Source of the DNA: Macrostomum lignano
Taxonomy: Eukaryota
Direction: 5' to 3'
NCBI GenBank assembly: GCA_002269645.1
Contig: NIVC01000033.1
Span: 113,335 to 177,334 of the forward strand
Length of the DNA stretch: 64,000 nucleotides
In this document: in pieces, positions 9,197-19,717 of the stretch
Layout of the letters: every line of letters starts with the position of its first letter
Numbering within the stretch: position 1 is the stretch's first letter
Notes under the pieces: generated by a model
What the model was told of the DNA's origin: nothing
The model's database searches: none
The model's input: the letters and a program-made list of their open reading frames with translations, nothing else
Translations under genes and position numbers: made by a program

Positions 9197-12100
9197 CTCT
9201 TATTTCCAATGAGCATGATCACCATATTGGAGCTGCTGTGCTGCCTGGCATCCTCCAGCCAGGTAGTCAAGTGATTGAAGGTGTCCCGGCGGGTGATGTC
9301 ATAGACTAGGAGGGCGCCCGCGGCCCCGCGATAGTAGGAGCGGGTGATGGAGCGGAAAGACTCCTGGCCGGCCTGAGTAGAAGATGAAATTTTGGAATTT
9401 AGAAATACCCGGTTGTGTTAATTAATAATTAAAGTGATGTGCCACCTGTTTAGACCAATACAAGGGCTTTTTACGAATCAATTTTGTTTATGCAGTCCGA
9501 TGCACCCCTTCACGGAGGGTTGGGGCACAGTAGCTCGGGGTTTCTGAGTTGGATTGCTGATCAGCACTGCAGCTGTCAGTGACCAGTGAAACCGGAGCTG
9601 TGATCAGCACTGCAGCTGTCAGTGACCAGTGAAACCGGAGCTGTGATCAGCACTGCAGCTGTCAGTGACCAGTGAAACCGGAGCTGTGATCAGCACTGCA
9701 GCTGTCAGTGACCAGTGAAACCGGAGCTGTGATCAGCACTGCAGCTGTCAGTGACCAGTGAAACCGGAGCTGTGATCAGCACTGCAGCTGTCAGTGACCT
9801 GTGAAGCCGGAGCTGTGATCAGCACTGCAGCTGTCAGTGACCAGTGAAACCGGAGCTGTAATCAGCACGGCAGCTGTCAGTGACCAGTGAAACCGGAGCT
9901 GTGATCAGCACTGCAGCTGTCAGTGACCAGTGAAACCGGAGCTGTGATCAGCACTGCAGCTGTCAGTGACCAGTGAAACCGGAGCTGTGATCAGCACTGC
10001 AGCTGTCAGTGACCAGTGAAACCGGAGCTGTGATCAGCACTGCAGCTGTCAGTGACCAGTGAAACCGGAGCTGTGATCAGCACTGCAGCTGTCAGTGACT
10101 TGTGAAACCGGAGCTGCGATCAGAGCGGCAGCTCTCCCTGATTATTCCATTAGTGTGGAAGTTCTTTAAAAATTGGCCTCGACTGCAGAATGTCTATTCG
10201 GGAAAATATGTTTACAAAAAGGTAAATATTGATGAGGAAAAGCGACCTCTCTACTCACAGTGTCCCAGATCTGCAGCTTGATCTGCTTTCCATCAATAGT
10301 GATCATTCGAGCTCCAAATTCCACACCTGCAGATGGTTAAGTTGAGCTTTCAAATAAAAATGTATTGAAATAGAAATTAGTTTGAGCGCTCACCAATTGT
10401 GAGATCGTGAACTGGCTGGAACCGCTTGTCCGTGAACTGCAGGAGTAGACAGGACTTGCCAACGCCTGTTTTGAAAGTTTTAACAATCCAGTCAGTTAGC
10501 ATTTAACTAATAACTACTGACTTTTATTGAATTTATTTTCGTATCATTAATGCCAGTGGCACATTAAAATCTAGTAATAATGCAGTTATACTAGCAAAAC
10601 ATGAAAGCATGATTTTTTAATAATTACTTATGCAAGCATGGTTTTAACTGAAAAAGTGCACAGAATTCCATCAGAAAGTATTTGCAGCAGTTTCAAATTA
10701 ACGAATTGTATACACATGCAACCTCAACAAATTCAACTGGCAATGCAACTTCCTATATACTAAAAATGAAAATCTTGCTTGCTTGCAATCAATTAGAGAA
10801 AAATAGTTTTCTGTTTTTAATATTTTTGACTTCTGATTTTATTTTGATTTCTAGATTTCCACTTCAGTATGCCACTTTTTCTCCTATTTTCTTCTTTTTT
10901 TTACATTTTTGCTTTTTTAAATTGAAAAAGTAAATATAAAAATTGCATATAAAATAAAAAATTCTAATAAAGCCCAATTGTCTAGGGCTAGGGAAAATGT
11001 TTTGGTAAAATTTGAATGCCCTTAGAGAACAGTACATTAGTCTCACTCAAATGACATTTTTAGTGAGAATTCTAGCATATAATTTTAGTATTTTGCATAC
11101 ATTAATGTGCAACCAGGCATTGCCAAAATTTCATTCTACAAGTGTAGTGTACATTTGCCAATTTTCAAAGTATAGTTGCACACCATATATACCACTATGT
11201 CATTGTGATTTCCCTTTTAGTCTATCCACTAGACCCCTCTCTTCTAGTGTGAATGTGATCTGGCCTTGTATATATAACCCATAGTCTAGATCATAGTAAG
11301 GTGTATGAAAGTTCTTTGTGTGCCAACTTTAAGAAAATCTTTAAAAAAATTTAGTTTAACTATATCATAAAGCATCCATTTTTAGAAAGTTTTTATATAT
11401 CAAATAAGAGTACAAGTGTGCATTACATAGTAATTTACAGATAAATATTTGAAATTTCATTGTAGTTCAATACTGATTTGTCTTTGTGCTCATTTTGTTG
11501 CCATTTTTGCTTTTTTGTATTTGCATTGCCATTAATTTTTGACTCTTTTGTTCATTTTTATGCTTAGTGTTAGTGACTAGGCCTATTTATTATTTTATCT
11601 AATCTAGTTAACAAATTAGTCAAATTATTATGCAGCTTACTGGTTTACTATAATAGTAAACAAAATACTAAACTTTCTAATTAATAGAAGCTTAGAGAAA
11701 TTAGAACAGATTTTTTGCTTTTGTATAATACTTTATATCTGAAAAGGTACTCCAAAATGAGATATTCTGTACTTTTCTTTTTAAAAATATTTAAAAATAT
11801 ATTCCTTACCAATATACAAATTTATGTATATAAGCTAGCCATATTATTCATATAAAATTATTAGAGTTTATTGTTTTCTAGTATTAAGCATATGAAAAAA
11901 GTAAAGTTTTTTCTGACACTGAATAAAGGCATTTTACATAATTAAGTATTTGTTATTGAGTAATTATTTATTTAAAAAAATAGTTCTTTGCTTTCTCTTA
12001 TTAAAATATATCCCCCTGCTTTTTGTCTAAGATATATCACATAACAATATACATCTTTAGAAAAGCATATCCATTTTATAAAAGACTATTTATATAGTAG

Positions 12101-18100: not shown

Positions 18101-19717
18101 CATAGATATGGTCTTTTAAAGTACCCCTTTATAGCATCCACCTACACCTTCCAATCTGTTGCACAATATGCTAGAAAAAAATGATTCCTTATATCATAAA
18201 TTCAAATTTATGCCAGAAAAACAAATTTAGTTATGAAAGATTTTCATTTTTATTATATAGGATCTATATTTCAAACATTATAAAGAATGTTGCAATAATA
18301 AAGGACATTTTTGTATTGTGACATTATATAAAACCCTTTTTTGCATTACAACATTTGGTTATTTGTATACCAATAGCTATTATGTTATATACCAGCTTTG
18401 TGGCACAATTTTTTTGGGTGGATTGCTTTATATGTTGGATAATTTATGGTCCCATGTCAATAATTCCAATTTTATCCACACGGATCCGTGTCAATAATTT
18501 TCAGCTTATCCCCACATCTAAGATTGTGCAGTTGATTATATTTATTTTAGTATAATAACATTAAATCGATATTGTTTTTATTATTAGTATTATTACTCAT
18601 TATTATTATTATATTCTAAATTTTGAATTTTGCAAGTCTCATTCGCCTCGATCTTAGGGTCCGTTTGGTCGTTCTAAGCAAAGCTGGCAGCTAGGCAAAT
18701 ATTTTAACATTAACCCTATTAATGATGAAAAGTTTTAACAAAGTACTTGATACTATTCATTATTCAGTTGTTTACATGGAAGATTTGTAAAACAGTGAAA
18801 ACAAATAGATGGTTTTGAACAGATTCATTTTAAAGTTCTTTATTCTAATAAGCTGCCATAGGGATAAGCTGGAAATTATTGACATAGATCCATGTGAATA
18901 AAATTGGAATTATTGACACAGGAATGGGGGGGATAAGCACTTCCCTATAGTATTGTATGCTAGAATTTTCCAGCCTATATGTAAGATTTGGGAGTGGGGA
19001 TATCTGTGAGTTTTGGTGATTCTATTTTAATAGGGCTATTTTTATGGTACTTTGCAAATAATTAATACTCTGGCAGCTATAGAAATGACTAATCAAATAG
19101 ACTTAACTCAAACTCAACTTCTTGTTCATGGTTTATTAATTTGTTTCCAATTGTCTTTTATCATTAAAATCCATTTTTTAATGGCTATCAATCTAGCAAT
19201 GGTATTCCAATAATGCAATTTATGCGTATAATATATAGCAGAAGCATTTTACTTTTTAATGGGTGGTTGATATTAGGATTTTGTTTAAGATAAGATCAAA
19301 ATGAAACAATGAGATTCAAAACAAAATATTTAAATGTTTGAAAGACTGTTCAAACAATCAAAGTTTAAAGTAGATAACTGCCTGCAGAAGACTGCCAGAT
19401 CCATAGCCATTAAAAATGGGTTCCGGTGCCAGAACTCTAGCCATTACCACTATTAATAATGCTTGCTCTAACCTTGGCTTTGTAAATGCTATATAAATGA
19501 TTATGAGTAGGCCTATATTAAAAAGAAATTTTAGTTCTCACTGCAAAAATACATTCAAAAGCCTTTTTATTTGAGTTTTTATTTTTAGGTATCTATGTAT
19601 CTATATTTAGAAGATCTCAGAGATTTAGTATATTGTGATTAAGTCACTAGATTCAAGAATTATTTTATTACCTGTATCTCCAATAATAATGTACTTAAAC
19701 AAGTAAGCGTAAGACAT
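9197..19717 (-). CDS. RAB2A: Rab2 small GTPase, exons 1-4 (remaining 3' exons lie left of the window)
   Basis: GT-AG exons: 19717-19672 ([15 protein letters not shown]), 10465-10394 ([24 protein letters not shown]), 10326-10259 ([23 protein letters not shown]) and 9372-9197 ([58 protein letters not shown]). Phases are compatible and the protein is near-identical to Rab2. Confidence 0.96.
9558..10122. repeat. 43-bp minisatellite in Rab2 intron 3
   Basis: About 13 copies of GTGATCAGCACTGCAGCTGTCAGTGACCAGTGAAACCGGAGCT. Confidence 0.95.
13518..14072 (+). pseudogene. Truncated retroelement gag-like ORF with an N-terminal SAP domain (resembles DIRS/Ngaro ORF1)
   Basis: [33 protein letters not shown] fits the SAP pattern. 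It is followed by a coiled coil and [38 protein letters not shown]. The stop codon comes from the start of the next repeat. Family assignment is from memory of motifs only. Confidence 0.55.
14068..15775. repeat. Composite repeat with interstitial telomeric tracts, a ~190-bp direct repeat, nested inverted repeats and a 13-mer array
   Basis: Direct repeats 14068-14260 and 14802-~14997, both ending in (CCCTAA)n. (TTAGGG)4 at 14308-14335. Inverted repeats at 14261-14296/14763-14800 and 14390-14508/14584-14703. Variant telomere array 14967-15261 and GCGTCA(A/G)CCAA array 15262-15625. Confidence 0.85.
16643..17080 (+). pseudogene. Possible decayed hAT-like transposase fragment
   Basis: IVGIVA(N)GQYIHNG...LLIDYGHA recalls the DGQY / DxxH region of hAT-like transposases. 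Lies between inverted CpG-eroded repeats. Weak support. Confidence 0.3.

Follow-up and report, generated by a model that had tools for sequence, protein, structure and literature searches.

Near-complete loss of CpG in the spacers between promoter and first internal exon of Rab2 and PEX1 in a Macrostomum lignano genomic window, with methylation of cytosine as the probable cause

We analysed a 64-kb stretch of contig NIVC01000033.1 of the flatworm Macrostomum lignano (called the window in what follows) and found two AT-rich blocks which have lost nearly all their CpG dinucleotides: the first intron of the Rab2 gene and the DNA preceding the first recognisable coding exon of PEX1. In both genes the loss concerns the spacer which separates the promoter from the first internal exon. 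We consider it probable, from the sequence, that the CpGs were lost by deamination of 5-methylcytosine (5mC), through a DNMT1/DNMT3 system that the species has retained. An earlier note on this DNA had described a CpG-eroded domain just downstream of the start of Rab2 and had interpreted it as a methylation domain anchored on the start site and confined to the first kilobases of the transcription unit. The observation is confirmed by our analysis, while the interpretation is partly supported. What we describe is well documented, but as a local pattern found at two loci and not as a genomic rule.

The number of CpGs expected in a segment was calculated from the base composition of that segment, and we write o/e for the ratio of the observed number to the expected one. 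The analysis covered the window and one further M. lignano locus, L001 (NIVC01004641.1). Exact matching of the Pol, mariner transposase, gag and Myb ORFs of the window yielded no additional locus, and a protein search with Rab2 and PEX1 combined gave mainly Rab proteins, with none from M. lignano among the 120 matches listed; with a PEX1 exon, mainly AAA ATPases were obtained. The exons of Rab2 were located by tblastn, the query being the human RAB2A sequence, and the splice sites were then read (coordinates are collected in Table 1). The average o/e of the window is 0.79. In the old parts of Rab2 intron 1, which lie on either side of a block of later insertions, there are 2 CpGs instead of 58.6 on the distal side and 15 instead of 90.4 on the promoter-proximal side, or 8 instead of 80 when an insertion resembling a miniature inverted-repeat transposable element (MITE) is left out. 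The longest run without a CpG anywhere in the window is found there: it extends over 2,544 bp, from 10702 to 13246, where 54 CpGs are expected.

The region upstream of the Rab2 ATG has the same GC content (0.29) as the depleted parts of the intron, yet it is CpG-normal, with 20 CpGs for 16.7 expected, which agrees with the earlier statement that CpGs return upstream of the ATG. Since this equally AT-rich flank keeps its CpGs, the depletion is not a side effect of AT-richness. CpG is the only one of the 16 dinucleotides which sets intron 1 apart from the flank; GpC has an o/e of 1.6-1.7 in both. At L001, AT-leaning DNA in general has an o/e of 0.6-0.7, and hence the two blocks of the window are exceptional. 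There is no GC or AT skew along the sense strand in the depleted parts of the intron. We conclude that the depletion of Rab2 intron 1 is real, specific of CpG and symmetric between the strands. A mitochondrial insert had been considered as the origin of the block, and the absence of strand skew rules it out.

The 5' edge of the depletion is sharp and coincides with Rab2 exon 1, not with any repeat boundary: the first 250 bp of the intron contain 1 CpG for 5.0 expected. At the other end, the final CpG-free stretch stops at 10702, just upstream of exon 2, which starts at 10469. Exons 2-4, which had been called CpG-rich, are only moderately so (15 CpGs for 24.1 expected, o/e 0.62), and the non-repeat pieces of introns 2-4, 573 bp in total, have an o/e of ~0.75. 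In PEX1, the o/e is 0.87 in the exons and 0.76 in 1.3 kb of non-repeat downstream introns. Compared with the non-repeat downstream introns of these two genes, the first intron is depleted about ten times more strongly. Downstream of exon 2, Rab2 offers only exons, minisatellites, the 573 bp of non-repeat intron and a young gypsy array: intron 3 consists mainly of a 43-bp minisatellite (9558-10123), each unit of which has one CpG, with 97% identity between units, a 31-bp minisatellite follows exon 4 (in what is intron 4 if the gene continues past the window), and the remainder of the gene lies past the left end of the window, beyond the tandem gypsy array. As there is so little old non-coding DNA past exon 2, the 3' boundary of the depletion is confounded with the class of sequence. 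A side observation concerns the exons themselves, whose composition tracks the local block in both genes: the GC content is 0.30 in Rab2 exon 1, where codons end in A or T, and 0.55 in exons 2-4, and it is 0.42 in the N-terminal exons of PEX1 and 0.61 in the later ones.

Two families of repeats inside intron 1 have kept a record of the decay. A TG in one copy of a repeat opposite a CA in the other is the trace left by an ancestral CpG which was deaminated on a different strand in each copy. The earlier note had reported a homology between ~13014-13121 and the reverse complement of ~17326-17449, with three such TG/CA examples. The homology is real (copies A and B in Table 1): in a local alignment which tolerates transitions it reaches 105, whereas shuffled controls reach 34-40, and the three examples are present in the alignment as quoted. 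Over 139 aligned bases the copies are 72% identical and differ by 30 transitions and 9 transversions; there are 5 complementary TG/CA pairs, where a random placement of the transitions would give 1.1 (P ~0.002). A second match put forward at the same time, between 11278-11307 and the reverse complement of 17451-17481, is also found (27/30), but taken alone it is not clearly above chance for the comparison of 9 kb with itself. The MITE-like insertion is an independent case: its two arms differ at nine positions, all of them by transitions, and at least 5 of these resolve to CpG sites, the states being CG/TG, CG/TA and CA/TG; the left arm retains 2 CpGs and the right arm 0. The loss of CpGs thus took place in situ, after the duplication of the repeats. 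With the exception of the A/B pair and of the MITE arms, homology was undetectable for the old parts of the blocks, whether among themselves or with other available DNA. In particular, transition-tolerant alignment gave none when the Rab2 block was compared with that of PEX1, nor when the blocks were compared with the remainder of the window or with L001.

The CpGs which remain in intron 1 are mostly those of the inserts: 80 of the 97 lie in the insert block. Younger inserts had been recognised at 14-15.8 kb; they do exist, but they span 13.25-16.0 kb. Their erosion is graded, with an o/e of 0.36 in a fragment of a SAP-domain open reading frame (ORF), 0.61 in an element with telomere-type repeats, 1.25 in a 13-bp minisatellite and 0.50 in the tail. 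The SAP-domain ORF (203 aa, 13461-14072) is on the plus strand, antisense within the Rab2 intron, in a segment of GC content 0.48 which is already CpG-eroded (the o/e of 0.36 being that of 13246-14066); the ratio (CpA+TpG)/(ApC+GpT) reaches 2.26 in 13501-14000. The telomere-type repeats are interstitial and occur in both orientations, as (CCCTAA)n and (TTAGGG)n, at 14230-14335 and 14967-15269; they are placed at the ends of a duplicated unit of ~190 bp (14067-14260 and 14803-14997) and adjoin the 13-bp minisatellite.

The same pattern had been claimed at PEX1. The block is indeed there, 44130-45100 containing 0 CpGs for 13.4 expected and 45831-46857 containing 0 for 20.9, while its position relative to the start site is only inferred. 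These two stretches enclose a CpG-normal segment of 730 bp (45101-45830, 12 CpGs for 13.2 expected), in which clustered TGATCA-type motifs resemble transposon-end repeats when judged by eye. PEX1 is on the minus strand, with the N-domain exon within 43486-42923, the D2 AAA domain at 38888-37937 and a stop near 37766. Upstream of its first recognisable coding exon, which is in phase 0 right at its AG acceptor, a search for an ATG-bearing exon 1 or a start site gave no convincing candidate. From its sequence, the gene may receive its start codon from a trans-spliced leader. The spliced leader of M. lignano ends in ATG and 30% of the genes are trans-spliced (PMC8629364), so the block may be an outron and not a cis intron. 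Intron or outron, it would be a transcribed spacer between the promoter and the first coding exon. The presumed promoter regions of both genes are spared, with an o/e of 1.20 at 19718-20500 and of 1.06 at 46858-48380.

Table 1. Positions and CpG content of the features discussed (CpGs are given as observed/expected)
Feature	Positions	Strand	CpGs	o/e	GC	Remarks
Rab2 intron 1	10470-19671	minus				9.2 kb
Rab2 intron 1, distal old part	10470-13245	minus	2/58.6	0.03	0.291	Poisson P 6e-23
Rab2 intron 1, insert block	13246-16015		80/126	0.63		
Rab2 intron 1, promoter-proximal old part	16016-19671	minus	15/90.4	0.17	0.315	
The same without the MITE-like insertion	16016-19671 minus 18450-18923		8/80	0.10		
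Decayed repeat copy A	13001-13139	plus	0 observed			homologous to the reverse complement of 17308-17462
Decayed repeat copy B	17308-17462	minus	0 observed			
MITE-like insertion	18450-18923					63-nt terminal inverted repeats
Rab2 exon 1	19672-19717	minus	1 observed		0.30	ATG at 19717; 15 residues, then GT donor
Rab2 exon 2	10392-10469	minus				canonical splice sites
Rab2 exon 3	10247-10327	minus				canonical splice sites
Rab2 exon 4	9198-9372	minus				canonical splice sites
Rab2 upstream region, presumed promoter	19718-20527	minus	20/16.7	1.20	0.29	CpG counts for 19718-20500 (783 bp)
AT-rich block upstream of the first recognisable PEX1 coding exon	44050-46857	minus				2.8 kb; putative intron 1 or outron
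First recognisable PEX1 coding exon	43906-44049	minus				phase 0 at AG acceptor; no in-frame ATG
CpG-normal region, presumed divergent promoter	46858-48380		52/48.9	1.06	0.36	between the PEX1 block and the plus-strand EF-hand gene
Tandem gypsy array	1-8517	plus		~1	0.65-0.70	LTR-internal-LTR-internal-LTR (LTR, long terminal repeat); period 4093; downstream of Rab2 exon 4
Intact Mos1-type mariner	20528-21841	plus				32-nt terminal repeats 20528-20559 and 21810-21841, 29/32 match; 327-aa transposase ORF, ATG 20714
SOX/HMG-box gene	23.3-24.3 kb	plus				named from reading of the translation only
Apparent EF-hand gene	~27.4-28.3 kb	plus				without Pfam match
ATP5A (mitochondrial ATP synthase alpha subunit)	29702-33000	minus		0.98	0.63	compact; GC and o/e of exons; no AT-rich 5' block
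OXA1L-like gene	~36.6 to 34.07 kb	minus				named from reading of the translation only
EF-hand gene	~48.4-52.3 kb	plus				Pfam match

The mechanism which we propose would be the following. A DNMT1/DNMT3 system would methylate the DNA of the stem-cell and germ lineage, the spontaneous deamination of 5mC would drive the loss, and transitions from CpG to TpG or CpA would have piled up in place over a long time. The promoter side would be protected, giving the sharp 5' edge at exon 1, and the exons and the short downstream introns would be much less affected. The CpGs inside a block belong almost only to later insertions, eroded to varying degrees, and it would be the first intron or outron, not a constant distance to the start site, which sets how far the block extends. 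According to reviews which cite Wasik et al. 2015, both DNMT1 and DNMT3 are retained in M. lignano (PMC9246332, PMC11292947, PMC10658182). We infer that 5mC is the cause and the germ line the lineage concerned; as to the rule by which the blocks would be targeted, it could be the position of the start site, a long spliced-out 5' spacer, or old AT-rich DNA derived from repeats.

Were the start site to set the rule, as the earlier note proposed, methylation would cover the first kilobases of every transcription unit of the genome, regardless of the class of sequence. The sharp 5' edge at Rab2 exon 1 beside a promoter which is CpG-normal at equal GC content, the presence of another block 5' of PEX1 and the undepleted downstream introns all speak for it. 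The lengths of the two blocks, however, 9.2 and 2.8 kb, follow the positions of the exons and not a distance, each block ending near the next exon, and inserts inside keep their CpGs, with a CpG-rich 13-bp array in the middle of the supposed domain; the limit to the first kilobases is not borne out. At Rab2 the depletion does start at the donor of exon 1. An AT-rich, CpG-depleted 5' block is absent at SOX, at both EF-hand genes and at ATP5A, none of which has a long first intron, and the 5' parts of the SOX and EF-hand genes are GC-rich and CpG-normal. ATP5A is not a clean counter-example, because it is possibly a downstream member of an operon, in which case both it and the OXA1L-like gene may lack a start site of their own. 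PEX1, the OXA1L-like gene and ATP5A are arranged head to tail on the minus strand (29700-47000) with gaps of ~0.5 kb, minisatellites discounted, and by the criterion of PMC8629364 this arrangement makes them a candidate operon. No start site was found for PEX1, the sample is of two blocks, and CpG erosion is also present at the unrelated L001 locus, as described below. On the whole we hold a rule based on the start site to be rather unlikely.

The earlier note had also argued against a general methylation of transposons from the CpG richness of the gypsy array and of the mariner. Both are CpG-rich (the mariner, which is inserted ~0.8 kb upstream of the Rab2 ATG, has an o/e of 0.84 on 20500-21800), but the argument is void. 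Between the two gypsy copies of the window there are 2 differences in 4360 positions, and 11-13 differences separate them from a solo copy at L001 (9045-13398), the identities being 99.6-99.95%; the gag (DUF7041) and pol ORFs are intact, and this family looks recently or currently active. The Pol ORF (1021-4185, 1,054 aa) is 100% identical to the M. lignano NCBI protein BOX15_Mlig009783g10, which places the window in this free-living flatworm. With near-identical gypsy copies and a mariner whose ORF and terminal repeats are intact, both elements are too young to have decayed. Their CpG richness is therefore uninformative on the methylation of transposons, and it lends nothing to a start-site rule.

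The tandem repeats were also examined from this angle. About 21% of the window consists of minisatellites or microsatellites, in ~30 arrays with units of 4-46 bp, many of them intronic (Rab2 intron 3, ATP5A, PEX1, EF-hand gene), and, outside the two blocks, the make-up of their units accounts for the majority of apparent CpG "deserts" and "islands". The GC-rich CpG-free stretches distant from gene starts, which could have served as counter-examples (36855-37515, 33081-33681, 35406-35825, 26860-27359, 25509-26033, 30477-30984 and 63312-63873) are all mini- or microsatellites whose unit has no CpG, and we discarded them as uninformative. The strongest CpG-specific variation is found in a 23-bp minisatellite (49552-50953), 1-2.5 kb into the plus-strand EF-hand gene, a position which fits a start-site rule: the frequency of transitions is 0.25 at CpG sites and 0.011 at the other G/C sites, with unit variants CCGG/CTGG and TCGG/TTGG which are partly fixed in a higher-order repeat. 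Arrays at 28771 and 52487, outside the blocks, also have CpG-specific variation, and other arrays do not. As mutation clocks the minisatellites are only suggestive, because the amplification of units makes the events non-independent. Scans of the window with Rfam and for tRNAs gave no RNA gene.

Alternatively, methylation could be aimed at repeats, and age would do the rest: the debris of old transposons lodged in long first introns would be fully decayed, while young elements would still be CpG-rich. Both examples of decay inside a block are repeats, and the erosion of the inserts is graded. Outside the blocks, the window (53798-54601) and L001 (8108-8926) share an interspersed repeat family with 78-85% identity, whose L001 copy has 10 CpGs whereas its counterpart in the window has 28; 16 CpG transitions separate the two. 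This means that CpG erosion depends on the locus. An older LTR element at L001 has an o/e of ~0.6-0.7. Moreover, a methylation of transposons only is reported for chaetognaths, early nematodes and ctenophores, which all practise trans-splicing (PMC12460157), as M. lignano does for 30% of its genes (PMC8629364). On the other hand, the transposon origin of most of the block DNA is unproven, with no detectable homology beyond the A/B pair and the MITE arms, and the 5' edge coincides with exon 1 instead of a repeat boundary. The differences between gypsy copies show no excess of CpG transitions either (3 of 13, when 22% of the bases lie in CpGs), in what is a tiny sample. Targeting of repeats is thus a possible rule, about which we are nevertheless doubtful.

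There may also be no methylation at present. The blocks would then be fossils of a heavier past regime, or simply old neutral DNA at an AT-rich and CpG-poor mutational equilibrium, while constraint or GC-biased gene conversion would keep promoters, exons and short introns CpG-normal. Indeed the blocks are the most AT-rich and the least alignable DNA of the window, the GC content of the Rab2 exons shares their gradient from 5' to 3', and the reviews give a low level of 5mC for M. lignano. This does not account for the flank which is CpG-normal at identical GC content, nor for the AT-leaning DNA of L001, which keeps its o/e of 0.6-0.7, and the later inserts are partly eroded, which implies that the process went on after the formation of the blocks. 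Furthermore, no genome devoid of DNMT1/3 is known to reach a CpG o/e as low as 0.03. We consider an absence of current methylation to be very unlikely.

AT-rich blocks with sharp boundaries, and repeats which diverge mainly by transitions, also evoke repeat-induced point mutation (RIP), or the editing by a deaminase of duplicated or retro-copied sequences, as in the AT-rich isochores of fungi. RIP is recognised by a high TpA/ApT together with a (CpA+TpG)/(ApC+GpT) below ~1.03, which we calculated in 500-bp windows. In the old parts of the block the second index is 1.1-1.75, and it falls below 1.03 in two windows of the inserts only; TpA/ApT is ~0.83-1.19 in the old parts (~0.9-1.2 over most of the block) and rises to 1.24-2.67 only in three windows of the inserts (14001-15500), the two with the low second index being among them. 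We rejected RIP on these indices. In addition the depletion is confined to CpG, there is no asymmetry between strands, most of the block is not duplicated and no animal is known to have a RID-type system. Such a process is extremely improbable here.

Several facts nonetheless weigh against 5mC deamination as the cause of the loss. The first is the 13-bp minisatellite (15270-15625), which contains CpGs, stands in the middle of intron 1 and has the o/e of 1.25 given above. Its units diverge by 19%, with a transition rate of 0.148 at CpGs and 0.109 at other G/C sites. This is awkward: either the array arrived recently and was already diverged, or intron 1 was unevenly targeted. Second, the products of deamination do not stand out, as TpG/CpA amounts to 1.20-1.30 in the block and to 1.28-1.34 in the undepleted upstream flank. 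The excess being equal there, TpG/CpA along the window, which the earlier note had recommended as a marker, does not discriminate. Third, a GC content of 0.29 is beyond the reach of CpG loss alone, and a second compositional force is acting. Given that the flank is equally AT-rich, the AT-richness is a separate regional property. Fourth, the level of 5mC in M. lignano is described only as low in the reviews (PMC9246332, PMC11292947, PMC10658182). Finally, there are two loci only, and no start site was found for PEX1.

A further reading is that a dense and long-lived methylation is limited to the first intron or outron, as the transcribed spacer which cis- or trans-splicing takes out, sparing the promoter, the exons and the downstream introns. 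It would be of a kind undescribed in animals, and we regard it as unlikely. In that case the targeting of methylation would be tied to 5' RNA processing in a trans-splicing flatworm, and the low global level of 5mC would be explained, the target having already mutated away. M. lignano has retained DNMT1 and DNMT3, unlike parasitic flatworms and the planarian Schmidtea mediterranea, and a footprint pointing to the first intron or outron as a long-term target would yield a concrete and testable prediction for its methylome. It would also be a warning that, behind a low global level of 5mC, a compartment may be strongly methylated and devoid of the CpGs it once had. According to a 2022 review, the methylation pattern of no free-living flatworm had been described (PMC9246332).

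The pattern resembles the mosaic gene-body methylation of invertebrates in that the transcribed region of a housekeeping gene is CpG-depleted beside an undepleted promoter, in a species with DNMT1 and DNMT3, and in that CpGs are lost symmetrically to TpG and CpA. It differs from it in its footprint, limited to the first long intron or outron: the exons (o/e 0.62-0.98) and the non-repeat downstream introns (~0.75) are little affected, whereas in classical gene-body methylation the depletion runs along exons and introns, which is not what we found. ATP5A is a classic methylated housekeeping gene elsewhere, and that of M. lignano has no depletion footprint. In holometabolous insects and Daphnia, intragenic methylation is biased towards the 5' end and centred on exons 2-4. 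Here too the signal gathers towards the 5' side of the transcription unit, past a promoter which would be unmethylated, but it is the intron which is stripped, and exons 2-4 are comparatively spared. The CpG-normal promoter patches (19.7-20.5 kb and 46.9-48.4 kb) abutting depleted DNA recall the CpG islands of vertebrates; however, the depletion is local (2.8-9 kb) and not genome-wide, with a window average of 0.79, and the "islands" are AT-rich (GC content 0.29-0.36). With the isochores that RIP produces in fungi, the blocks share their sharp boundaries, their AT-richness and their transition-rich repeat copies, but not the indices, nor a depletion affecting other dinucleotides than CpG, nor the host, which is an animal. 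The transposon-targeted methylation of chaetognaths, early nematodes and ctenophores (PMC12460157) is also found in trans-splicing species, and here too there are decayed repeats inside the block and a CpG-eroded copy at L001, although the transposon origin of most of the block is not demonstrable and the edge tracks exon 1. The pattern is compatible with the transposon-targeted methylation of these other trans-splicing phyla.

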